The notes under the pieces were generated by a model. That model searched no databases. It was given only the letters and a program-made list of their open reading frames with translations, and was not told the origin of the DNA. This document shows positions 2,571-63,100 of a stretch of DNA of 64,000 nt, one piece after another. The stretch's first letter is position 1; the number at the start of each line of letters is the position of its first letter. The translations under genes and the position numbers were made by a program. Source of the stretch: Heteronotia binoei (Eukaryota); the NCBI RefSeq assembly GCF_032191835.1, contig NC_083235.1, forward strand, positions 23,994,001-24,058,000, in the 5' to 3' direction.

Positions 2571-2832
2571 TAGCATAGTCAAGTCTCTTCCTCCTCCTTT
2601 GAGTCTGTTGCATCCTTCTCTCCCCCTTTGCTCTTCTTCCTCTTGTCCATCACAGGATCCGATTTGCCTGAGAAACAGCTCGTTCCAAAATAGTGCGAGG
2701 AGAAGCTAAATATGGGTCTTGCGGAATCCTTAATTCTGGGCGGCAGAACGGAGCTTTTTCAACACCAGCCGGTTTGCGTACATCCTTGTGCCTAGCTGCC
2801 CCCAGGGGATAGGTGAAAGCACCAGTATCTAT

Positions 2833-2838
2833 TTTATT
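2833..2838 (-). terminator. Candidate STAT6 polyadenylation signal AATAAA
   Basis: First AATAAA seen on the minus strand after the stop, about 375 nt downstream (tttatt on + strand). Confidence 0.45.
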
Positions 2839-3213
2839 TTACAAAATATCCTGCCTCTCTGCCCTCACGAGGGCAGCCGAGCCAGAGAACAGCCTGAGTC
2901 TGTGGATCCTGAGAAAAAAACCCTCCTCGTAATCTAGGCTGCTGCTGAAGGGTGAAAATCCCCTCCCAGTGTGTCACATCCGAAACCCTACCATACACCA
3001 CACCCCTTTCTGACAGGTCGCTTCTCGAGAGGAGCACAGGCAAAGCGCAAAGCATCTGAGGCCACAATCCCGCTTCCCTTTCTGGGACAAAGTGCATTCT
3101 AGTTCCTCTGGCTCAGTTGGAAAAAAATGGCCAAATGTATCCGTTGTCAGTTGGTCACGCCGTCCATTAAGGTCCATAGAAAGTCCTTCCAAAAATATGA
3201 GGTGTGAAGATTA

Positions 3214-3331
3214 TCAACAGAGGTTGGTCAGGGTAGGTCCGGAACTGTGGGAAGAGTGAAGCAGAAGTGGCTGGTGCTGGATCAGTTGCTCCAGCTCGTA
3301 GATGGAGGGCGCAGGCAAGTTCTCAGAGGCT
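3214..3331 (-). CDS. STAT6: STAT6 terminal coding exon with LxxLL-like motif
   Basis: [38 protein letters not shown]; acceptor tttacctccctag; phase fits; LEQLI and QPLL echo human LTKLL...QPLL. Confidence 0.75.
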
Positions 3332-5264
3332 CTAGGGAGGTAAAGAGAAGCTGGGTAGACGCAATGCTAAGGCCCTCATGACGGTCCAGGGATCCCTCTT
3401 TCCTGCCACGGTTCCTCTGCCCTGAAATGTTCTGCAACTGGTCACCTTCCAGTGTGTTTCCCATTAATCCACCCTCTTTAAGAACACAAGAAGAACCCTG
3501 CTGGATGAGACTAGTTGTCCATCTTGTCCAGCTCACACAGTGACCAACCTGTTCCTCCGGAGGGCCAACAACAGGGCACAGAGGCCGAGGCCTTCCCCTC
3601 ATAAGAACATAAGAAGAGCCCTGCTGGATCAGACCAATAGTTCACCTAATCCAGCGTCCTGTCTAACATAGTGGCCAACCAGTTCCTCTCTATGGCTGTC
3701 AACAGGGCATAGAGGCTATGGCCTTCCCCTGATGCTGCCTCCTGGCTCCGGGATTCAGAGGTTTAGTGCCTCAGTCACCATGGCTAGCAGCCAGTGATAG
3801 TCCTATCTGCCCACCTTGGCTCCTCCTCAAATCGCACACTACCCAGCCCTACTACTACAGGTCTCAAAGCATCGCCATGGATTTATCTCCTCATCTCTCT
3901 CTCCCCTTAATGCCCCCTTTTAGTTCACTTTGCGAAATTAGTCACATGACCCCTGCAATATCCCACTGTGCCTCATCCCACAACCGCCAACTGCAATTAA
4001 CTGTAAAACATATTGCCCATGTAAATAAAGCCAGTTTCTGATTGGCTATTGTGGCTCCCAGCTGAGAAACTCCAGGAAACTTGTATCTCTGAAAGCGCTA
4101 GGGGTTGCTAACTGACATTTCTCACTCCCTTCTCAAAACGGCATTTTTCTGACTTTGGAGATCAGGGGGATATTTAAACCTCCGAAAAATGCACAGAGTA
4201 GATGAATGTTCAGTTGAAGCACAGCAGTGAAATTTTCATCTACAACTGGCAGTTGAAGGAAGGAATCTGCTCTGTCCCACCAGCTCGCCCCCTTCAAAAA
4301 CTCTCGCCACACTCACAATGGATCCAGCGCCATGTGGTAATCCATGACTCCGTGGCAGTTTAAGTCAGGCAGGCAGATATCCATCTCTGACTCCTGAAGC
4401 AAGAGGTGTGAATCAACCGAGTCGAGGGGCAAAGTGTTTCCTTGAGACATCCAATTGATCTCAGGAGGAGGAGGCAAACTGGATGGACAAAGAAGACTGA
4501 GTCAGAAGAGGCACCAAGAATAGAGAATTCTAGTTAAGATCAATACCTGGTCGGCTAAGGGGATGAAAACAATGCCCAGGGCCTTTCTCCTCTTCCATAG
4601 CAGTAGATCTGATCTTTTGCATGCTGGAATAACCAGCTCAGATTACAAAGCTGTATCCAAGAAGCGTTACGCTAAACACAATGGAAATTATATATATATA
4701 TATATATGAGAGCTCCATGGTGTAGAGTTTTAAAGCTGCAGTACTGCAGTTCTAAGCTCTGCTAACGACCTGAGTTCGATCCCAGTGGAAGCTGGGTTCA
4801 GGTAGCCAGCTCAAGGTTGACTCAGCCTTCCATCCTTCCGAGGTCAGTAAAATGAGTCCCCAGCTTGCTGGGGGGAAAAGCGTAGATGACTGGGGAAGGC
4901 AATGGCAAACCACGCCGTAAAAAGTCTGCTGTGAAAATGCTGTGAAAGCAACGTCATCCCAGAGCCAGAAACAACTAGTGCTTGCACAGGGGACTACCTT
5001 TTCCTATATATATATACATACATATATGTGTGTGTGTGTATATTCCATTGTATTTATCCTAATGCTTCTTAACTACATATAGTAGCAGGAACTCTTTTGC
5101 ATATTAGGCCACACACTCCTGAAGTAGCCAATCCTCCTGGAGCTTACAGGGCTCTTAGTACAGGGCCTATTGAAAGTTCCAAGAGGACTGGCTACATCAG
5201 GGGGGTGGCTACATCAGGGGCCTGTGGCCTAATATGCAAAGGAGTTCCTGCCACAAAAAAAGCC

Positions 5265-5310
<46 letters not shown>

Positions 5311-8300
5311 CATAATTCATACCAAGGGAAAGCAATACAAGTGGCATATTCATAATTCATACCAAGGGAAAGCAATACAAGTGGCATATTTTCACACAGG
5401 GAGGAGCTTATGTGATTTCACCACTGCTGGTGCAGCTGTTGATAAACATTAGGGCTTCAACATGGCAAGGTTTCCTTAATTTCCCTGCCCCAGTCCCTCC
5501 GCATCGGCCAAACCCCCCTCCCCAAAGAAAGCAAGGCTTTTGCTTTTTTTTTAAATGATCACTAGAATATCATTATTAATATACTATTGTAATAACAAAC
5601 ATACCATGTCCTCCAAATTCCCAGCTTCCATTTAAAAAGTAAATCTGTAGCCCCTTCCATTGTGGAGATATGCCTTTCTCCTTATATCTCTGCAATGAAA
5701 GGGACAGAGATTTACTTTTTGAAAAAAACGTGCGAGGGGAGCCAGGAACCTCCTGAGTTCCTTGGAAGAAGAGCAGTATAAAAATGCATGGGCAGAAAAA
5801 AAGGGCAAAAAAGAGGTGCAATTGCTGTTCAGAAGTCATTGGAAAGATGCAACCACAGATCTTCCTGTATCTCATCTGTTTTGATCCTGGCTTAAATGCA
5901 ACCACAAAGAAGAAGAAGAAGAATTGCAGATTTATACCCCACTCTTCTCCCTGAATCAGAGACTCAGAACGGCTTACAATCTCCTATGTCTTCTCCCCCA
6001 ACAACAGACACCCTGTGAGGTGGGTGGGGCTGAGAGGGCTCTCACAGCAGCTGCCCTTTCAAGGACAACTCCTGCCATAGCTGTGGCTAACCCAAGGCCA
6101 TTCCAGCAGCTGTAGGAGGAGTGGGGAATCAAACCCGGTTCTCCCAGATACGAGTCCACACACGTAACCACTACACCAAAAGGCAGGGATTCTTACGTTT
6201 GCATTATCTGGTTTCCACAATTTGTGTTCATGGGAGAGAGCATGCTCCGGTGACTCGCTGCTTGCGGAAGTATCATCGGTGAAGGGCTGCGAGAAGGACA
6301 AAGCAAAGGCGACCATCAAAAATTTGCAAAAGGAAAAAGGACCAAAGTCGGAACCAGAAACGGACTGGGGGGAAATGCACCAAACTAGGGGTGTTGCAAG
6401 AAACAGTGCCACAGAAAGGAGCTAAGGACCACAGAAAGGAGCTAAGGCCACCACTACATCACTGAGAAATGGCAGGAAACCCAAATTCTTTTTGGTTTAC
6501 ATTAAAGTTGCTTTGCTAACTGCTCAAGTGTCAATTAAACGAATGCTGACCAGAATACTGGAGCATGGGAGCAGGTTTATTTCTTGGCAAGCCACTGGGT
6601 AAGAATAACATCTGCACATTTTGCTTTTTATCTCTTAAGGAGCTTGAGGTTGTTCTTTTAAAAAGATCAAAGCTGAGCATTCAGGAAATAAGCCCGAAGG
6701 AGAGGGAGAGAGTAGGCCATGCATGGAAGTCAAGGGGGGGAGGGCAGAGCATTCCCTGACAGATTTTAAGTTTCCTCTCCCACTTGGGACAACTCTGTAA
6801 ATGATGCGAGTTTCCATCAAGTAGGAGCCTCCTCGTCTCTATATGGCCCTTGTTTCTTTCCCTACTGGGAGTTCTAACTACACATTGGTGCCGCTCTGTT
6901 CTAAAACGATCATGCTGCTCTGTACCAAAAGCAACTACGTCTTATTTGTTATTCTTTATTTTTATGTTAGATTTATATCCCGCCCAATCTACAAAGACTC
7001 AAGGCGGCTAACAACATAAAATAAACAAAGGCAACATTAGTGAACAGTATTAAAACAATAAAACAGTAAAAGAATCAAATAAAATCACAATGGTGCTACT
7101 ACATCTATTATAGGCAGGATCATATAGTATCTTCCTCTCTTCAAAGCTGTCGAATCCTAGGCAGTTGGTACTAACGCAAGATAGGTCCAGGTGAGGTGGC
7201 AGCCCTCTCCCATGTAGATATTATATGCCATACAGAATAATCCAATCTTGCAGGCCCTGCGGAACTGTGGTAAGTCCCACAGGACCCTGATGGCTTCTGG
7301 GAGGGTGTTCCAGATTATTGGGGCTGCCACCGCAAAGGCTCTGGTGGAATTTAGCCTAGCCTCTTTTAGCCCAGAGACAACCAGAAGATTTTAGGAACTT
7401 GATCAAAGTGCTCTCTGGGGAACTGTAGCAGAAAAATAATGGGACAGCACTCAATTACTGGTATGAAGCAAGGTTTTTTTACTTTGACGCCAAAGCAGAG
7501 TCCACTGAAACGTAATTCCCCCTCAAAATACTTAACTGAATCATATAATACACAAACAGCCTTCTTTAAGCACAAATGCAAGCTAGCAGGCAGGCCCATG
7601 AGCTTATCTGATTGCAACATCTCCGCCCCCTCGCTCTCTTTCTGGTAAAATTCCATGGTTTGTCCCCTCACTCTATCTGCTACAGCCAGACGCCTTCAAT
7701 GAGGCTCCTGTCTCTTATCTAATACACATATTTGAATACACACCCATTGAAGCTGTCTGGCCTCTAATGGACAGTTACATCAGACACCCTAGTTTTAAAA
7801 AGTAAAAGCATGCTTTCATTCATTATTATAGAGGTATTAATTAATTATTCAGGGCCCCCCCTTCAGAACATGTGGGGCAAGGCGGTCCCGCAGACAGGTA
7901 GGTCCTAGGTCATATAGGGCTTTGAAGGTTAATACCAGGACCTTGAAACGAATTTGGTACACAACAGGCAGCCAGTGCTGTGCCCTCGGCACAGGCTGAA
8001 TGTGCTCCTGCCAAGGGAGCCCCATTAGTAGCCTGGCTGCAGCATTCTGCACCAGTTGCAGCTTCCGAATCTGAGTTAAGGGCAGCCCCATGCAGAGGCC
8101 ACCTAACTGGCCGACTCCTATACATCGGCCCTGTTCGCAACACATTTCTAGAACCTGGATATGGTAACAAGCATCTGGGGAGAGGAATTGCAACGAAAAA
8201 CATGATGGGTGGGAGGGAGAGCTAAGAATGCCGTCTGTGCTAATAGCACCCTTCCACTACCACTCTGCTAAGCAGCAGCACCGGTTTGAGGGTTTGGGGG

Positions 8301-10440: not shown

Positions 10441-13400
10441 ATCCCAGAAAAAAAAATCAAATTCCANNNNNNNNNNNNNNNNNNNNNNNNNNNNNNNNNN
10501 NNNNNNNNNNNNNNNNNNNNNNNNNNNNNNNNNNNNNNNNNNNNNNNNNNNNNNNNNNNNNNNNNNNNNNNNNNNNNNNNNNNNNNNNNNNNNNNNNNNN
10601 NNNNNNNNNNNNNNNNNNNNNNNNNNNNNNNNNNNNNNNNNNNNNNNNNNNNNNNNNNNNNNNNNNNNNNNNNNNNNNNNNNNNNNNNNNNNNNNNNNNN
10701 NNNNNNNNNNNNNNNNNGGAAAAAGACTGACAGAAAGAAAGAAAGAAAAAAAGAGAGAGGGGGGAGTGGGAAATAAGACAAACAGAGAAAAAGAAAGAAG
10801 GAAGAAAATAAAGTGAATAGACAGAAAGAAAAATGAATGAATGAATTTAACATGTGCATATAATCACTGCGATGTTCAAAAAATATTTTGCCAAGAGGCA
10901 GCTTGGATCTATAGGTTAAAAACATTTATGCCTCATGGACTTAATACAAATTTAGATCTATCACGTTATTTATAGGAGTTTAAGACTATTTGTAATGTAA
11001 CAATACTTGCATGCTGACATTTTCTTCAATTAATGATATAATTAGAAATGAGAAATTTATTGAACAAGCGTATATGCATTATATTTTATTTATTGGATAT
11101 TCTATCAGTCAGATATTAATAATTAAGTTCACACTTGTGATTTGTTGCTTTAAGTACGTGACAGTTTCACATGTAGCTGCGTGGAATTACAAGGGTTTAA
11201 GAAAGGCACCGCTATCAGTCTGTTTAGAGAGCCTTGTGCTGGCTAACATTAGAACAGAAGGCTTCGTACCTAGTATGAAAAGATGAAAGGGCCAGCTTAC
11301 TTCCTATATAGAGCTATAAATCATAGGTAAGTCTAAATTGTTTAGTTTTTGTCCCTGAAGAATATTTAAATTCCATTCAGCTACTTGGTGGCCTTTCTGT
11401 TGTACTCTTCATGGTCAATTCTAGGGAAATAACCACAGAGGGAAGATCTATTAAGAATACCTTCTGAGGAAGATTCATCACAAAACGAGCTTACATCTGG
11501 ATGTTATCAATTCATTACAGAAGCTGTCCTCAGCAGCATCACAAGGCTGGGACCTTTCTTAATTTACATTACAGGGTCACATTAATTGTGCATATCTTTG
11601 CTATCTACTTGGAGAGCTAATTTGGTGCAGTGGTTAAGAGCACGAACACTAACTGAAAGAACCATATTCGAATCCCCACTCCTCTACATGCAGCCAGCTG
11701 AATGACCTTGGGCAAATCACAGTTCTCTCGTAGCTGCTCTTTCAAGAGCAGTTCTTGAAAGAGCTCTCTCGAAAGAGCTCTCTCAGGTGTCTGTTGTGGG
11801 GAGGTGAAGCAAAAAGGAGACTGTAAATGGCTCTGAGACTCTGAGTGAGGGGCGGAGTATAAATCCAATCTCCTCCTCTTCTTCTATGCAATGTAACTTC
11901 ATTATAAAGCTTAGTAGCTATTATTCACAGTGATTAACACTGCTTAGGACAGCGCTTTACATCACTGGCTGAAGCCATAAGACTTCATGACTTCTACATT
12001 CTTAGAACGCAGGGCTTTTTTTTTTAGCAGGAATGCACAGGAACTCTGTTCTGGCTGGCTTGGTGTCAGGGAACATGGCCTAATATGCAAATGAGTTCCT
12101 GCTGGGCTTTTTCTGCAAAAAATGGTGATGTAGGGGGGCGTGGCTTAATGAGTTCCTGCTGGGCTTTTTCTACAAAAAAGCCCTGTTGGAATGTATAGTA
12201 CAGAGGCCTTCAATACAGTGCTCATGGGCCCCATGGCACCTTCCGGCAGCTTTATGGCAGCCAACAAAAGATTTTAGAAAGTGGGTGAAGCCAAGTGGAG
12301 CTTCTGCCCAGCGAGGCTTCTGATTGGCTACTGGAGATCTGAGTGGGTGTGCAGATTCTTACAAACATCATTTTGGCAGCAGCTGCCACTACAGCACAAG
12401 GATTTGCACAGTGTGACCGAAGGTAAGCTGCTGCAACTGTTTTGCAGTTGTCTCCGCCTCCAGTGGCATCCATGTGGCATCCATGTGCCTACCATACTAC
12501 ATCAAAATTCCAAAGTTGCCTGCATATTAAAAACATCTGGGATCCACTGATACAATAGTATCAGCAAAAGGAAGGGGAAGGAGATGTTTTCTTGTCTCTG
12601 TTTTCATGAAACCATGGCAATACTGTGGCCTGCTGTCAATTCAAGTAGAGCTATCCCACAGTTCTCTTTGGCACAGAGCAAAACCACAGGACAGTTTGTT
12701 ATATAAACATCAAAGTTACTAAAAGCTTTCTTCCACGGCAGAGTACTTTTATTTCATACTGTGCCAAAGGAATGACATGTTATTTCTTTCGCCAGTTAAC
12801 AGAGTCATGCTTCCTTTAACTTGTAGAACACTTTCTAATACCTCTACACACTGGGCTACAGATACACCAGGAATCTTTAAGTATTTTTGAGACACAAGGC
12901 AAGAACTGAAAAAAACAATCTACACCAAAATGTCCTGGCAGCCCTTGATGTCCTTTGTTCTTTAAAAGAACTCGATAGCTGAACTACCGGGTTCCCCCAT
13001 TTCATGCACAATAGAGACACAAGCACCTGGCAGATCAGTAGTAGAGAGTTGCCACTTACTCAGAGTAAGTAGGATCAGTATGGATCCCAGGATTCCCACT
13101 GAGATTGGATACGGATCCCATTAAGTCCTGTTCCGGCAGAACCAAGCTGGGAGGTCTAGAATGAAACACAAACTGTGTTAGCATCCTTTCCCCCCTCCCC
13201 GGTTTAAAGTTTTTATTAAATTTCCACAGAGGGGAAAGGGAAGGGGAATGAGGGAATAGCTAGACATAAAGAATACATAAAGAAATATTACATTCTGCAT
13301 ATCGATATGACAATAAGAGTAAAAAGGCAATAGAATAAGTCAATAAATTCAAAATACATTCAAAATAACGATTGTTAGCATCCATTTTTTTTAAAGTGCA

Positions 13401-16400
13401 AAATCTGCCAATGGATGGGTTTGCACCTGCCAGCAAGACATCAAACATATGTAATACACCTCAGCCAGAAGATCTACTGGTGGCCCAATGTTTGGTTCTG
13501 GCAAGTTGTGCATTCAGTGTATGCCTGGGACACACACACACACAATCTCTATGATCTCAGTCACAGCCAGCCAGAATCTGACCAATTTCCCATACAGCCC
13601 AGCAGGTTTTTCATAACAGCATTTGGAATTCAAATGCCTAAAGGAAATGTAAACACTAGATGACAACAGTGGAGGGATTCCTCCCCCCATATGCTGCCCC
13701 ATGATAACATTTAAACAGCAAGGTTATTGGGGCAAAGAACTCTTCTTTCTGGGCATATGCTGCTAAGACTACCTTTATTTCATACTGTGTCAAAGAAATA
13801 CCATGCAATCTCTTTCACCAATTTAGTAGTGCTTATTTTTAATTTGGAGAAAACTTTCTAGTACTTCTACATACTAAGCTATGGATACAGCTGGATTCTT
13901 GACGTGTGTTTCAGAAGGAGGGCAGGGATTGTGTAAAACAATCCACACTGAAATGTCAAAGCAGCACTTTGTCCTATTTCCTTAAAAGGTGGGCTGTAAA
14001 ACAGGGATGCCAGCCTCCAGGTGGGACCTGGGGATCCCCTGGAATTGCAGCTCATTCTCCAAACACAGAGATCTGTTCCCCTGGAGAAAATGGAGGCTTC
14101 AGAGGGTGGACTCTGTGGCATTACACCCCAGAGATCCCTGTTCTCCCCAGCTCTATCCCCAAATCTCTAGGATTCCCCAACCTGGATCTGGCCACCCTAC
14201 CTGCGCCCCAAATACCTGGCAATCTTAGCTATAATCCTTTCTAGCTGAACTACTATGTTCCTCCATTTCAAATTTCAGGCTATTCACATTCTTTGTCAAT
14301 GACTTTCCATCAGTGTTTCCTCTAAGTTGAGCTAGCGTGAACTAGCTCACAGTTTTTTAGCCTCTGGCTCACACATTTTTGCCTTAGCTCAGAAAAAATG
14401 GCCCTGGAGCAACTTAATTTATGCAGTAGCTCATAACCTTAATGCCAGTAGCTCATGAAATAGAATTTTTGCTCACAAGACTCCACAGCTTAGAGGGAGG
14501 ATTGCTTCGCATATCTTATTCATGCTGGGAGAAATAATGGGGCAATGTGTGTATTTATCTAACATATTTTTCTCGATGTGTGTCTTTATCTAATATATTT
14601 TTTATTCTCACTCTTACAGAGAACCACTAAGAAATTCCATTGGCACCCTTTCTGGTACTGTATCATACAGAGAAAGTCACAATGCAGACACAAGCGCCCA
14701 GAAGATTAGCAGTAGAGACTTGTCACTTACCCAGGGTAAAGATCAGTAGGGATTCCAGGACTCATGTTAAGATTGGACACGGAGTTGTGTAAATTCTGTT
14801 CTTGTGGAGCCGGGTCTGAAGATCTGGAATTGAACACAAGCTTACGTTAGCATCCATTTTTTAAAAAATGCAAAATCTACCTATGAGGGGGTTTGCGCCA
14901 GCTGGCTCATCACTCGCAGACCAGTGACACCTTGCTCAAGTGAACTGAAGTATCATAAAATGGAAACAGAGCTTTCAGACCACCACAGCTCACACAATAC
15001 TTTTCAACCAAGGCATTTCATAAAGCAGGAGTGGCCAAACATAAGAGCCATATAGAATATACATCAGATGTTTGAGAGCTGCAAGACACGAACATCAGAG
15101 GAAGGAAGGAAGGAAGATTAGATGGGGGATGGAGGAGGGAAGGAGAGGTGGAATGAAAGCAATTTTAAATGCATTCTCCAAGTCACTGGCTGGCTTGGCT
15201 TGGAGAAGTGATTTAAAGAGAGATATGCCTTCTCTAAGCCAGCCAACGAGGCAGTGGAGCCTTCGAAAGCCACACAATAAGTGTGAAAGAGTCACATGTG
15301 GCTCCTGAGCCACAGTTTGGCTACCCCTGTCATAGAGCTTGTTCCTTTACACACTGCAATTCACTGCTACAAGTTATAGAGAGAAGGCAGAACAAATTCA
15401 TGAGGGATACAGATGAGACATACACACACAATCAGAGTTCTAAGCAACACAACCTGGCACTCTAACCAATTTTCCTTATAGCATAGCATGTTTTTCATAA
15501 CACCATCTGATACCCAAATACCTACATGAAACGTAACCACCAGATGATAACAGTGGAGAAATCCCTCCCCCCTTTTTCAGTTGTTTCCCCATGATAACAT
15601 TTAGATGGCAAGGTCTTTAGGGCAGAGAATTAGCTTCCTGGCATATGCTGCTAAGTGCCACGTGTAGTGATGTACACTTAAAAAAACCCCACCACTTCAC
15701 TTCCAGATATCCATTGCCGTACTAATGATACATCTAAGGTACTGCTTGCCAAAGTGGTAAGCGAATTGGAAGCTAGGAGTGGTCTTCAGAGCTCACCACA
15801 CCCCAAGGAAGGTTCAGAGGGGCAGAGGCAATCTTCATTCATCTGAGCCATGCAAAGGGAAAATTCAAGCACTCACGTGCCCACGGTTATCCTTATCTGG
15901 GTTGGGATGTATTCTTTGTTGGTCTTCCTTGGTAACTCTTCTGTAGGAAGAAATATACCCAGTGCTGAAATGCTCCAGGCACAAAACCAGGCCCAATTTT
16001 CTCATGACAAAAGTACCCCAAGCAACAGCATTATTTCTCCAGAGCACAAAAATGAGATCTTAAGCTTTCTGCCTTGAACTGCCAGTTGAGTTGAACTTTT
16101 TGACTGCACAGGGATCACTGGAGCTTCCAGTTAAGGATTTAGCTTGTGATTTGATGTCCCAATAGAAAGGGCACAGCAGATCACCTGACAACCTTTTATT
16201 CCATGCGACGTCCCCAACATGACGATGTCACTTCTATGTGATGTTATCACACGGGGGACATTGCTCGACATCCCAGCTCCCTCTGGGAATGTCCCCCAAG
16301 CCCCGCCCCCCAACTGGCATGCAGGTAAAGGTAATCCCCTGTGCAAGCACTGAGTTATTACCACAGCATGATGTTTTCTTGGCAACCTTTTTTTACAGGG

Positions 16401-46400: not shown

Positions 46401-49400
46401 CCTTCTGCTGCTGCTCTCAGCCTCTGTGCAATGAGAGACAGGTAGAATGCTCAGCTGTAAAACAAGCAACCGACATGGGGTTGCAAGAAGGACCAGCCAG
46501 ATCATCATTGTAAAGTAAACCCTGTAAGGTGCTGAATAGAGCCAAGGGTCACGTGGCACTGATGTACTGTGGGGACACAGCATGAGGAAAGTCTGGATGT
46601 GGAGAGGTTCTAGGGACATCATACACCAATGAATTGAGGAGCCATCTGCCTGCTAGAGAAGCAGGACGCATCAAGGAAACAGCAGCATCTTCTGAAGGGT
46701 TAAAATCTCTGGCGACCCTCTAGGCGTCATGAGATTGAGGGTGGTGGGACTGCATTTGTCCTCATAGTTGCCTTGTAGATATAACATTTAGGGCCCGGGG
46801 TGATGATCCAGGTCTAGAACTATAGAAGAGCTTTGGGTGGGATGAGAAACCACCCTACCTTGTTCTGAACAACTACCCGCTCCGCTTCTAGAATCTGTTT
46901 CACGGTTCTTGCCAACTGCAGTGGATCTCTCCGATAAGCATTCTGTAATCAGAAAGAACAAGAGAAATGTTATTGGCATTTCTTCCTTCAACCTGAAAAG
47001 CAGCTACTCGATAGCTGCTCTCATAGAAATTGCTCTAGGGCAGCTGGGGAGCTGCGTCTGTGAAGGGAAAGGATCTTAAGGCCATTGGGGGTGGGCCGTG
47101 CAGGCGTTCACCCGCCTGAGACTCCCGAAGCAAAGTTTATACTCTGAAGTATGAGCGCTGCACAGAAAGATCCAATCTTGGCTGTGGCAAATCAGGTCTT
47201 TCTGTGCAGAGGACAGAACTGGTATTAGTTCTTTACGCTATGCTGTGCTCATGAAACTGGCTCTGAGACATAGAGCAGTAGGATGAGGTGGGGGAATCCC
47301 AAGGTGGTTAAAATGGATTATGTCATTTCACACTACAGGTAGGTGAACAGTTCTGCGATTGCTCTCATCATGCAAAAAACCAAACCAACCAGGAATCGGC
47401 AAGGAAAAACTTGTATTGCAGAGAGCAAGATTCTAACCCTGCCCATCTCTGTGCTGTGCTAGTTTTATACTTAGATCAGGGGTGTCAAACATGCAATCAG
47501 GCCCCTGGAGGGCTCCAATCAGGCCCTCAAGCAACTCACATCTGCTTCCTTCTCTCTTGCTTCTTTCTGCATCACAGCTTGCTTTACCAGGCTTGCTCAA
47601 TCCAGCTACAGAGCAAAGCCTCTATTTTCTCCATTGGTTGACCAGCACATGAAGCAACTTATGTACAAAAGCTTGCAATGCCCAACCAATTCATGTTTTC
47701 ACCTGGGTCTTAGGCTCAAAGCACTGACCATGAGATTTCTGTAATGAATGTCAATCAATCAAAAGTAGGTTTGAAACTTAACAGATACACACCTGCACAA
47801 CACCTGAACAGCCTACACAAGATTGCTACGGCACAAACACTGTCTCCAGATTTTGATGCAATAATTCAGAGCAAGAGGTGTCAGTTATCAGAAACTGTTA
47901 AATAAACAAAGTATTGGAGAGTGCTAATCTTTTAAGTTTTTTTAAAAAAATCTTTAATTGTGTTTGTCTGTGTCCTTTATAAAGTTTCCATATCCAGAAC
48001 TGGCATTATATTTTATAACGCACATGGCCTGGCCCAACAAGGTCTCATTTATGTCAGAGCCAGCCCTCATAACAAATGAATTTGACACCCCAGACTTAGA
48101 TAGCTTTCTTATGAATGCATATCATAGCCAAATGACACAATCCATTCTAGCTCTTAAAGATTCTGTCATTTCCTTCTGCTGCATCGGGAGACCAGGTTTA
48201 AGGACTTCTCTGCCTGGAACTGCAACCACAATACAGGCCATACCTGGGGGCATGTGTGTTTATCTGGACCTCGGGGCTTCCCATGTCCCACAATAACCCC
48301 TCTGTAAGGTCTCTGGAGAAAGTCTAGATTATCCTGGGGGTTGGACTAGATGACTCTGGAGGTCCCTTCCAACTCTATGATTCTATGATTAAAGACCACT
48401 CCTAAGGGATGCCTTGTATCTAAGCAATCTGTCAGTCCTTTCAGTCCCAGAGTGGGAAAACCCAGTTCTTCAACACAAGGAAAGGGCAGGCCCACCTGCA
48501 TTGCTGAATCAACAAAGGATCCAGACCAGGCTACACCTCCATGCCTTTCCCTCAACACCATAAAGAGAGACAAGGACACCTGCGAGATGGAAGGGCATCC
48601 TGTCCTGATACAGCTAGTGCAGAGGTGGCCAAACTGCGGCTTGGGAACCACATGTGGCTCTTTTACACATACTGTGTTGCTCTTGAAGCCCCCACCACCC
48701 TGTTGGCCAGCTTGGAGAATGCATTTAAAGTTGCTTTCTTTCCACCTCTCCTTCCCCCCCACATCTATCTGCCTCCTGTCTTGCAGCTTTCAAACATCTG
48801 ACATTCATGTCTTGCGGCTCTCAAACACTGGACGTTTATTCTGTATGGCTCTTATGTTAAGCAAGTTTGGCCACCTCTGTGCTATTCACAAAAGAACATT
48901 AATGGAAACAGAGAGCTCCAGCAACAAACCCTGAAAGCACCATGCTAAGTGATAAGGCTGAAGATGCTACTGGTATCTTCTTCCAGTTCAGCACCTCAGG
49001 CCCCAGGCGTACCTCCAAGTTAGCAGTGAGCTGAAGAATTAAGCTGGGTTGGCAGTTTTTATTGGCCAACTCTTGCAGTTTCTCCATCATGGCAGAAAGA
49101 AGGCTGTCGGCCATGTAGGTGTTGAAAGTGTCTGACCCAGTGATGAATTCCCTGAGGAGAACAAAAGGAAACACATGCAAAGATTAAGATAAGAGTCACA
49201 TCTGAACCCATCCACCTCTTTTCAGGATTCTGTGACTGGCTGGTCTTGCCAGAACATACACATCACCTAATGGCCACCTATATAAAACATGTGGAGACAG
49301 GTTTTGCCACAGCAATTACAATCCATAACTATAGGAGAACCAGAACTGTCTTACGCCTATGGCTATATAACAAGGAATCTGTTAGCCAAATCTTGCGTCA

Positions 49401-59300: not shown

Positions 59301-59658
59301 AATGCCATGAACCCTCCTCTGTGCAAGCTACTCTTACACCTGAAGGAGTTTTGGCCCCACATATAATGTGGGTAGGAAGTTCCAAAGCAAACAAAATGCT
59401 AGGGAAAGAATTAAGCAGATACTCTGTATTTACCCCAAATGAGACGAATTCTCCCCCCACCCCCTGTGTGCCATCAAGAAAAAAAGAGTGGGTCATCTTA
59501 CATTCATATAAGTTAAAATACATTTTAAAAAACAAAACAAAAAACCCAACAACAACACTTCTTTGAGTATAACCTTTTCAGGGGAGTCATTCTTACACTC
59601 AAGGTGGTCTTCCTTGCTGGGGGAGGAAGAGAAACAGGCAAACCTGCTCTTGCTATGT

Positions 59659-60148
59659 TAGGGTTGCCAAGTCCAATTTAAGAAATATCTGGGGACTTTG
59701 GGGGTGGAGCCAAGATCAAGGCTGTGACAACATCATTGAACTCCAAAGGGAGTTCTGGCCATCACATTTAAAGAGACAGCACACCTTTTCAATGCCTTCC
59801 TTCCATAGGAAATAATGAAGGATAGGGGCACCTTCTTTGGGGACTCATAGAATTGGACCCCCTGGTCCAATCTTTTTGAAACTTGGGGGGGGGGGTATTT
59901 TGGGGAGAGCCACTAGATGCTATACCAAAAATTTGGTGCCTCTACCTCAAACAACAGCGCCCCCAAAGCCCCAGATACCCGCGGATCAATTCTCCATGAT
60001 TTTCTATGGGAATAAATCTCCATAGGGAATAACAGAGTTCCCGGCAGACATTTCCCTCCCCTCCCCCCGCTTTCTGACGCCCCTGAAGTGGAGGGAGGGC
60101 CTCCAAACCGGGGAATCTCCTGCCCCCACCTGGGAATTGGCAACCCTA
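59659..60148 (-). mobile_element. Non-autonomous hAT element with TAGGGTTGCCAA TIRs; opposite-orientation copy at 25866-26367; shorter related family at about 620-830, 13990-14200, 39436-39650, 57940-58145, 62534-62748, 63560-63775
   Basis: TIRs plus perfect 8-bp TSD tgctatgt. Confidence 0.8.
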
Positions 60149-63100
60149 TGCTATGTAGAATGGGTGTTTATTCTGGAGCGAAAGTACAGGGCTGCCGTGT
60201 TAGCTAGGCAACCTAAAAGGGAATGTGCTTGCAAGAGAAACAACAGTCCAAAGTGCAGATCTGGGTACGGCTGGTTCTGAAAGATCGCTCTACCAGGTCA
60301 AGAAAGCCAATGAGAAATCCAGACTGTTTCCTTAAGGACAACAGGCTACAGTCAAGGCCACCCTGGATCTGGATAGCCCAAGATAGCCCAATCTTGTCAG
60401 AATTTCGAACCTAAGGAGGGCTGGCCCTGATTACTATTTGGGTGGGAAACTATCGACTTATTTATCGTATGGCACAGCTACACACAGGAAGTTTGTAGTA
60501 ATATAAAATACGTAACCAAGTTGGTACAATAAGTACACACACCAATTGGGCAAACCCCCTAAATAGTAATATCTACATTTTCAACCCCCTCCGTTGCAGC
60601 TGGGGAAAGTTCAACATTCTCCAAAAATGACATGGAGTGTGTCTGCTACAACACTTAGAATCTACAACAAGCTCTCCCTCCCCCCCCTTTCCTCCCCAAG
60701 GAAGGAGCCTCAGCAAATGGAGAAAATAGAGGCTTTGCTCTATAGCTCCTGTGCAATTGAGCAAGCCTTGCAAAGCAAACTGTGATGCAGAAAGAAGCAA
60801 GAGAGAGGGAGAAGGAAGCAGATGACAGCCAGTCACTTGGGGACCTGATAGGAGTCTTCTGGGGGCCTGATTCGGCCCCTGAGCCACATGTTTGACACCC
60901 CTGTCTTAGATGCTCAGCTTTGGGGTTGCTGTATAGTACCAAGGAATATGATGCTTCAGTGTGGCTCAGTCATAAAGGAAATCTGGACACAGAGGCAGGC
61001 AACGGCAAACCACCAGTCTGAACAAACTCTTGCTTTGAAAATCCTACAGGGTCTCTGACTTGATGGCCAAAAAAAGAAAAAAGTCCAGGCTGGAAAGTTC
61101 TAAAGGCTTCTTACAAAGCACGGTACCCTGATATTTCACTTTATTTAGAAGAGTACTTTGCGTAGGTGAGGCACACTTTCCTCCCCCCTATTCAAATCAA
61201 AGGCACACCTCAATCCACGGTGCACGTTTGACTCTACAGCTAAGCCAGCCCTGTGTATCATCCTGCCAAGCTCTTACCATATCTCTGCAACTAGCTAAAA
61301 CCATCTGTAGTGCCAGGGCTTATGTGTTAGCTTGTCTGCCTAAGTCCCTGCAAGAGCTTCTGTTTACATTTAAAGGGTGATAACAGCCAGCTGAACAGCA
61401 TTAGACCTTAGCTGGTAATTAGTGGCTCTCTGGGATGGTTAAAGGAGGAGATTTTTCTTCCTTGTACAGCTTGCGTGCTAGCTTAGGCAAGGGGTTGATG
61501 CGGCCTTAGGGTCACTGAAGTGAATGTTTTGGAATCCTGGAAGACTCTGTCAGACAGTCCCAGAGGAGGAGTTGCCCTGTGAAGCTCTGGACTTTTAACT
61601 GTCTACAATTGGCTTGTTGCCAAGGTAGTTTAGCTAGTTATAAAAGATTTTTGTTATTTTCTTTACACTGTGTGTTGCGGAATGCCTGTGAACCCTGAAT
61701 AAATCTTGTTTGAACTTTTGTTCCAGTGTCTGTGTCAGTGGCTTGCAGAAGGGACCAGTTGCCTTTCGGACTTACCAAAGAGTGCTCCTGTGAGTGAATA
61801 CCTCAAGTCTCTCCCTATTAATATGAAAATTATTGACCCTTCTAGAAGGAACAGGGTGCACTGGGCTCTAGAACTTCGAATACCTGGTCTGGTGGCAGCT
61901 TATGTGGGGGAAGGTAGCAGAGCTCTGCCTCCTTTTATGGGATAAATTCTAAAGGGCCCTGTTAGCAGGGTTCCAAGACTGGTCTCCTCACAGGAAGCTA
62001 GGAAGAGTGCTCAAGGGGAACCAGGGGCTGAGGGGCTCTACACCATTGGCAATCAAAGTAGTAAAATTCTCCTTTTTTCGTTCCAATGGTATACTGACTA
62101 ATTTGAAATTACAGAACCTAAATGAAACATTCCCTAATCTCCTGGTGGTAACTGTATTTCCCAGCCTACAGGAGGAAAAGTAGTTGGGTGGAAGGAAGGG
62201 CCCAATTTTAATTGGAGGACGAATATCAATGCGGAAGAAAGCAGAAGAGAAATACTCAAGCATCTTCTCTCCCCAACCTCCAGTTCCTCTGTCAGTCTTT
62301 TGCAACTATTTTGCATCTAAAAATACATCGGGGGACTGCTTATGCATCACCTGCAAATGTTTTATATTGGCCCACAGAGACACATTTCCCAAGTTATAAG
62401 CATGCCAACAAGAGAGGTTGACTTTGGCACAGTGTTTGCCAATGGGCTGCCCATGGGTGCCATGGCACCCATGAATACCTTTCCTGGAACCCAAGTATTT
62501 TTAGACAGGTCACAGACCACTGTAGGACAGACAGGGTTGCCAGCTCCAGGTTATGATATACCTGGAGATTTGGGGGTGGAGCCTGTGGAGGGCAGGGTTT
62601 GGGGAGGGGAGGGACTCCAAACGGTGCAGTGCCATAGAACCCACCCTCCAAAGCAGCCATTTTCTCTGCAGGAAGTAACCTCTGTTGTCTGGAGATCAGT
62701 TGTAATTCTGGGGGATCTCCAGACCCCAGATGAAGGCTGGCAACCCTACAAGGAAACTGAAGTGTAGGGAACAAGAGGAGTAAATATTAAAAATACACTG
62801 GGAAGGAGTCAGAGACAGAATAAAACCAACACCGTAGCAGCAGCTCTCTGCACAACCAATCAGATTGCCAGTGGACAATCAGAAGCCCTATTGGGCAAGA
62901 GCCCATGTGGCCCAACCTACTTTCTAAAAATACTTGCTGGGTGCCAGGAAAGGTGTTGGTAGGCATTATGGTGCCCCAGGCACCACATGGGAGTCCCCTG
63001 ATGTAAAGACACATACATGCTGTGGGGGAGGGGGAGCAAATGGCCATCAGAAAACACATTGGTGGCTACCACAGCCCAACGTGGGATGCCACATTGAAGA

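Follow-up and report, generated by a model that had tools for sequence, protein, structure and literature searches.

Tandem duplication of an activation-domain exon in the STAT6 gene of Heteronotia binoei

In the gecko Heteronotia binoei, the first exon of the activation domain of STAT6, a key transcription factor of type-2 immunity, is present in two tandem copies, both of which are found in spliced mRNA. The gene is located on the minus strand of a 64,000-nucleotide (nt) stretch of contig NC_083235.1 (positions 23,994,001 to 24,058,000), which is called the window in the following and to which all coordinates refer unless stated otherwise; the exons and duplicated units described below are on the minus strand as well. 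We consider it very likely that the arrangement represents a lineage-level tandem duplication whose two exons, designated A (upstream copy) and B (downstream copy), are serially included and lengthen the STAT6 activation domain. The assignment of the gene to STAT6 is based on the products of the exon encoding the activating tyrosine (pTyr exon), exon A, and exon D, which are identical to the corresponding parts of the RefSeq protein XP_060109293.1 of H. binoei. This protein is named STAT6 in its source and contains the domains PF02865, PF01017, PF02864, and PF21354, i.e., the STAT_int, STAT_alpha, STAT_bind, linker, and SH2 architecture of the STAT family together with a C-terminal activating tyrosine. 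Exons for the linker and the SH2 domain were seen among the open frames of the window, and the KEYIP tyrosine motif is present. The region 12600-16000 (3,401 nt) showed 100% identity to the public H. binoei assembly.

The repeat was mapped with blastn by comparing the minus-strand segment 15900-13768 with the segment 13767-12300. Downstream of the pTyr exon, an intron-exon-intron unit is repeated head to tail, as evidenced by five collinear blocks with 71-86% identity and expect values (E) of 5e-41 to 5e-4. The blocks pair positions 15655-15415 with 13767-13529 (74%, E 5e-41), 14902-14846 with 13430-13374 (82%), 14858-14678 with 13189-13007 (71%, including the exon), 14270-14242 with 13004-12976 (86%), and 13988-13770 with 12968-12744 (73%, E 4e-37). 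Unit A, delimited by its collinear blocks with unit B and by repeat families D1-D7, comprises 1,886 nt (13770..15655), and unit B, delimited by the same blocks, comprises 1,024 nt (12744..13767). Unit A ends at 13770, directly next to position 13767, where unit B begins, which makes the repeat strictly tandem; the head-to-tail junction (13766..13770) was placed by the blastn boundaries and by alignment to other gekkonids. The first-pass annotation, made from the DNA letters alone, had proposed a tandemly repeated unit of about 1 kb, intron plus one exon, just after the pTyr exon, and the five blocks with their abutting ends bear this out.

Exon A (14731..14823, 93 nt) and exon B (13060..13155, 96 nt) are both of phase 2-2. 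They share 61 of 93 aligned nucleotides and the same residue in 14 of 30 aligned codons, differ by a single in-frame 3-nt indel, contain no stop codons, and are each bordered by an AG acceptor and a GTAAGT donor, with a gctaac motif located about 20 nt upstream. The coordinates, the identity count, the roughly 14 common residues, the phases, and the branch-point-like ctaac motif had been read from the sequence in the first-pass annotation and were reproduced here. The flanking introns of the two copies are 72-82% identical. Homology of the adjacent exons and their introns beyond chance, as seen in the five blocks, together with the symmetrical phase and the lengths divisible by three, characterizes a tandem exon duplication. 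A third copy of the exon was not found in the window by tblastn.

Unit A is longer than unit B because high-copy repeats have been inserted into it. These insertions (13968..14540, with more at about 14994-15335; no strand assigned) break the collinearity of the two units. At 13968-14195, 14310-14537, and 14994-15335, the depth of RNA contigs runs into the thousands and many loose ends occur; the repeats inside unit A represent high-copy elements that are transcribed from other places in the genome.

Both exon copies are joined in series in STAT6 mRNA

RNA data were aligned to the region 12600-16000 and comprised about 6% of each of the raw runs X4 and X5 (study P2), with 1 to 5 reads per joint, and the assembled contigs of runs X1 and X2 (study P1). 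In the X1 contig (2,249 nt, depth 51) as well as in the X2 contig (2,962 nt, depth 63), exon A is followed contiguously by exon B, with the introns removed at GT..AG borders. The pTyr exon (15877..15940, 64 nt, ending in phase 2), which is defined by its translation, its splice sites, and its identity to XP_060109293.1, is carried in the X1 contig, and its joint with exon A (from 15877) is present in both contigs. Among the raw reads, five from X5 cover the joint between the pTyr exon and exon A, and three cover the joint between A and B (14731->13155; one from X4 and two from X5). Past the donor of exon B at 13060, the X2 contig continues for 30 letters, whose reverse complement is the beginning of exon C (6197..6286, 90 nt, phase 2-2), the next activation-domain exon. 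Since contigs and reads connect the pTyr exon, A, and B, both copies are spliced in series into one mRNA, as in a constitutive duplication in which both copies are present together in mature mRNA. The inference in the first-pass annotation that both exons are used is thereby supported, each of them being joined in spliced RNA. A direct junction 14731->6286, which had been listed there for counting, was not what was observed, as the mRNA connects 6286 to the donor of B (13060) and not to that of A (14731).

The RNA evidence supports the view that both exons joined in series constitute a lengthened activation domain and are neither mutually exclusive modules nor in part a dead pseudo-exon. Tandemly duplicated symmetrical exons are often used as a mutually exclusive pair, and this general knowledge speaks for two STAT6 isoforms with different first activation-domain segments, as does the RefSeq protein XP_060109293.1, which skips B and C. 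In Paroedura picta, isoforms X1 and X3 contain a cassette exon between the two copies, which further suggests that this intron is prone to alternative splicing. A mutually exclusive pair would include one copy or the other and never both, and two contigs plus three raw reads with A spliced directly to B argue against it. No joint of the pTyr exon with B, no joint skipping A, and no joint of A with C or D was present among the joints listed for the reads and contigs aligned to 12600-16000, a region that ends short of C and D. In addition, the Gekko, Paroedura, and Eublepharis gene models hold every copy in series and include no annotated skipping isoform. Alternative use of the copies is therefore very unlikely. 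The first-pass annotation had left the choice between a lengthened activation domain and alternative modules; the joints from A to B and from B to C uphold the former, and at the low read depth no evidence for mutually exclusive use was obtained.

The Paroedura cassette mentioned above encodes 22 residues (GTDFLSQ…TSWR) and is located within positions 59324-60559 of the Paroedura locus. Its only counterpart in the window (14014-14079; 45% identity, E 6e-5) lies within a high-copy repeat of the A-B intron, which suggests that the cassette is an exonised repeat element.

Constraint on the duplicated exons

Frame and splice signals of the exon copies are conserved. All 11 gecko copies have a length that is a multiple of three (78-96 nt), in-frame indels account for 5 of 5 in the exon versus 8 of 21 in the adjacent intron (P ~0.008), and GTAAGT and AG are invariant across the gecko copies. 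Conservation amounts to 0.75 in the 45 nt before the exon, 0.78 in the 35 nt after it, 0.72 in the exon itself, and 0.63 in the far intron, the two zones next to the splice sites thus being the most conserved of the unit. At the level of the peptide, a core motif consisting of GSxSNLxxNPGI, then (T/S)DxxY and an acidic residue, has been retained by every B copy, by each of the Eublepharis copies, and by the one copy that other squamates possess; it is eroded in the A copies of Gekko japonicus and Paroedura. The peptide as such is weakly constrained.

One alternative is that one of the copies is a decaying pseudo-exon with an outwardly intact appearance. In favor of such decay, the exon copies are less alike (65.6%) than their flanking introns (75.6%; Fisher p 0.055), and the changes between them are spread evenly over the codon positions, with a ratio of nonsynonymous to synonymous substitution rates (dN/dS) near 0.7. 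A pseudo-exon should be devoid of RNA junctions, a point already made in the first-pass annotation, and junction reads were found for both copies, which are present in spliced mRNA; moreover, in four gekkonids the two have remained in frame, with invariant splice sites, since before the radiation of these animals. Decay of one copy is thus exceedingly unlikely.

Several observations weigh against the reading as a lengthened activation domain. Raw-read depth is low at every joint, and contigs reveal only the dominant path, so that minor skipping isoforms could coexist with it. The RNA exons differ from the assembly by about 2%, and the RNA source may not be the assembled individual. The absence of stop codons is weak as evidence (P 0.2-0.3 per clade). 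For the comparison of A with B, as suggested in the first-pass annotation, dN/dS could be calculated and was 0.65-0.69, with differences even across codon positions; among orthologues in independent species pairs it amounted to about 0.5 (exon A) and about 1.2 (exon B). No purifying selection at the residue level was detectable by dN/dS, as exons this short in a domain evolving this rapidly yield no usable signal. Finally, the RefSeq model XP_060109293.1, which derives from this very locus and agrees fully with the window up to the end of exon A and again in exon D, joins A straight to D. It is devoid of exons B, C, and E and instead contains an unrelated 50-residue tail (IKDSARPIF…) from an acceptor near 2737 downwards (window 2600-4478, minus strand). 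At least as the main form, this model is contradicted, with respect to B and C by the RNA and with respect to E by four other geckos.

Origin and age of the gekkonid duplication

The STAT6 loci of Gekko kuhli, G. japonicus, Paroedura picta, Eublepharis macularius, Podarcis lilfordi, and Elgaria multicarinata were compared with the window, and protein searches added STAT6 sequences of five further geckos as well as numerous other squamates; a second protein search for additional gecko families yielded no further ones. As determined by tblastn, the exon is present in two copies in each of four gekkonids, in three copies in Eublepharis, and in one copy in Podarcis and Elgaria, with no hidden extras. 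The possibility that A and B are old amniote exons matching two separate human exons, which the first-pass annotation had named as a potential refutation, is contradicted by the occurrence of only one copy between the pTyr exon and exon C in the DNA of Podarcis and Elgaria, by the single unit in the STAT6 proteins of eight further non-gecko squamates, and by the 72-82% identity of the introns flanking the two copies. Nothing beyond a general likeness of activation-domain segments speaks for this alternative, whose probability we regard as practically negligible. The suggestion in the first-pass annotation of a lineage-specific duplication holds insofar as the duplication is absent outside geckos (in Podarcis, Elgaria, and the eight further non-gecko squamates); it is not specific to the species but took place at the family level, as four gekkonids share the event.

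In trees calculated for the exon with 90 or 250 nt of flank, the gekkonid A copies formed one clade (support 81/95) and the gekkonid B copies another (100/100), the latter on a long stem. Exon A is on a short branch and nearest to the ancestral flanks. A duplication confined to Heteronotia was rejected in approximately unbiased (AU) tests (p 4e-6 and 4e-93). Across the junction of the two units, 400 nt align unbroken, with 75-80% identity, to the A-B intron of G. kuhli, G. japonicus, and Paroedura. This common set of copies with its common junction indicates one event in the common ancestor of Heteronotia, Paroedura, and Gekko. Local block alignments were used for the far intron flanks, because a global alignment (about 55% identity) is meaningless there owing to insertions. 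On a block that is single-copy in Eublepharis, distances were 0.60 between Eublepharis and A and 0.58 between Eublepharis and B, exceeding the distance between A and B (0.36), which in turn exceeded that between orthologues of the gekkonid genera (0.26). As a rough clock, these values would place the gekkonid event at about 0.6 of the time that has elapsed since Gekkonidae and Eublepharidae separated, a short time ahead of the gekkonid radiation. For crown Gekkota, ages of 104 to 137 million years have been published (preprint 10.64898/2026.10.21.760521); the split between the two families is younger. The gekkonid duplication would thus be roughly 50-85 million years old, a figure to be taken as approximate only.

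A probable separate expansion in Eublepharis

The three copies of Eublepharis cluster together in the tree (91/95 with 250-nt flanks). Forcing Eublepharis copy 1 to group with the A clade, or copies 2 and 3 with the B clade, gave AU p values of 0.018-0.042, with the groups having been named after the tree was seen. The Heteronotia intron aligns to Eublepharis with 77% identity over 450 nt, and the first approximately 120 nt of the gekkonid unit are single in Eublepharis, where they are located upstream of copy 1; the Eublepharis repeats begin about 175 nt further in. As the start of the Eublepharis repeat is shifted relative to the gekkonid unit, the breakpoints differ. Most simply, therefore, the three Eublepharis copies are probably a separate expansion of the same exon, as far as the alignments and trees can tell. 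Alternatively, the ancestor of Gekkonidae and Eublepharidae could have undergone one ancient duplication, with gene conversion and another duplication occurring later in Eublepharis. Such a history would explain the N-terminal PSDPAP signature common to Eublepharis copy 1 and the gekkonid A copies; gene conversion is able to cluster paralogues by species, and the AU rejections are marginal and concern groups chosen post hoc. The differing breakpoints, the grouping of the three Eublepharis units, and the position of Eublepharis equidistant from A and B, far beyond the A-B distance on the single-copy block, argue against it, and we regard one ancient event as unlikely, albeit deserving consideration.

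Beyond the question of origin, the exon might have expanded independently in two gecko families because extra copies of an acidic-aromatic motif were favored, tuning how strongly interleukin-4 and interleukin-13 drive transcription in geckos. We view this proposal as doubtful; if it were true, the geckos would provide a natural experiment in the motif valency of an activation domain.

Two details concern individual Eublepharis copies. Copy 2 is shortened to 78 nt, at its 3' end. For copy 3 (locus ~49085-49091), the annotated acceptor is located 6 nt upstream of the conserved ttctag and adds the residues S and R.

Nature of the duplicated segment and proposed mechanism

AlphaFold was used to model the STAT6 tail of G. 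kuhli with an alignment of squamate sequences. Model confidence was low, with a mean predicted local distance difference test (pLDDT) value of 56 and a predicted template modeling (pTM) score of 0.15. The sole predicted helix is VYELEQLIQ in the last exon, and the repeat region is without secondary structure. In view of the disorder in the model, the duplicated unit is no folded domain but a short module with which a disordered activation domain begins. The predicted VYELEQLIQ helix is the counterpart of the mammalian LXXLL motif, which in STAT6 binds NCoA-1 (PMC3082895). The human STAT6 activation domain comprises residues 642-847 and docks p100/SND1, CBP, and NCoA-1 (PMC1557814).

A tandem segmental duplication of about 1 kb, which most likely arose by unequal crossing-over or replication slippage, copied one symmetrical exon of about 96 nt together with its branch point, acceptor, and donor. 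The event became fixed in a gekkonid ancestor, later than the separation from Eublepharidae but earlier than the divergence of Heteronotia, Paroedura, and Gekko. Owing to the symmetry of the exon and to the strong splice signals preserved in both copies, these are included in series by the spliceosome, in the order pTyr exon, A, B, C. The protein thereby gains 31-32 residues and a second GSxSNLxxNPGIxTDxxY(S/P)(D/E) motif directly after the phosphotyrosine tail. The added module may alter the engagement of coactivators by the activation domain, e.g., through more valency of the acidic-aromatic motif; indirect support for a functional module comes from the conserved frame, splice signals, and core motif and from the disorder of the region. 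Neutrality is possible, too.

Relation to known systems

The gecko segment has the same position after the activating tyrosine as the mammalian STAT6 activation domain and is likewise rich in proline, serine, and acidic residues and disordered; furthermore, the LXXLL-like helix is kept as YELEQLIQ in gecko exon E (PMC1557814, PMC3082895). The two differ in that the first module occurs twice in gekkonids and three times in Eublepharis, as opposed to once in other squamates, and the similarity of the gecko first module to the mammalian sequence is too weak for a confident alignment.

Tandem exon duplication is well known, and activation domains tolerate such changes. The gecko exons conform to the general pattern in being adjacent and homologous, with homologous flanking introns, a symmetrical phase, and preserved splice signals; in contrast to the frequent mutually exclusive use of such pairs, the gecko copies are present together in one mRNA, and the same exon has apparently been expanded independently in a second gecko family. 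A literature search on STAT6 exon duplication and gecko STAT6 returned nothing relevant and, within the library searched, no paper on the repeat, the matches to "gecko" referring to the GeCKO CRISPR library. Proteins with both or all copies have already been deposited for Gekko, Paroedura, and Eublepharis. The gecko case is a fairly ordinary kind of exon duplication, the possible parallel expansion in a second family being its most interesting aspect. As a clean, dated, and transcript-verified case, it exemplifies how a disordered activation domain grows by exon duplication, and the apparent second expansion in leopard geckos provides natural one-, two-, and three-copy versions of STAT6 among squamates. 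On the practical side, the RefSeq model of H. binoei STAT6 is in want of three coding exons.

Exon organization of the STAT6 tail

The tail exons C, D, and E were located with the STAT6 protein of G. kuhli as a guide. Exon C, whose first 30 letters are entered by the X2 contig, is ancestral, as judged from its occurrence in non-gecko squamates. Exon D (4317..4478, 162 nt, phase 2-2) is homologous to the corresponding tail portions of Gekko, Paroedura, and Eublepharis. The terminal coding exon E (3214..3331), whose product ends in TLTNLC and whose stop codon is at 3216-3214, is homologous to the final exon in four further gecko proteins and lies outside the span covered by RNA. When the pTyr exon and exons A to E are spliced in this order, the frame is open up to the stop codon at 3216-3214, and every splice site is canonical.

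The internal activation-domain exons A, B, C, and D are all symmetrical with phase 2-2 (93, 96, 90, and 162 nt), so the tail is modular and tolerates gain, loss, and skipping of exons. The STAT6 model of G. japonicus is devoid of exon C. At the donor of exon D (window 4314-4319, minus strand), the sequence reads cca tt|gtgagt, and an in-frame TGA spans the splice site. In a hypothetical form retaining the intron after exon D, the protein would terminate at ALDPL and lose the LXXLL-like helix.

Between RNA and assembly, eight differences were found in the pTyr exon and exons A and B, seven of which alter an amino acid. The positions include 15894, 15908, 14822, 14780, 14766, 13112, and 13093; for example, YIP of the assembly is replaced by YVP in the RNA and, in the first codon of exon A, S is replaced by P. 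These differences suggest divergent lineages of a species complex and a fast-evolving tail.

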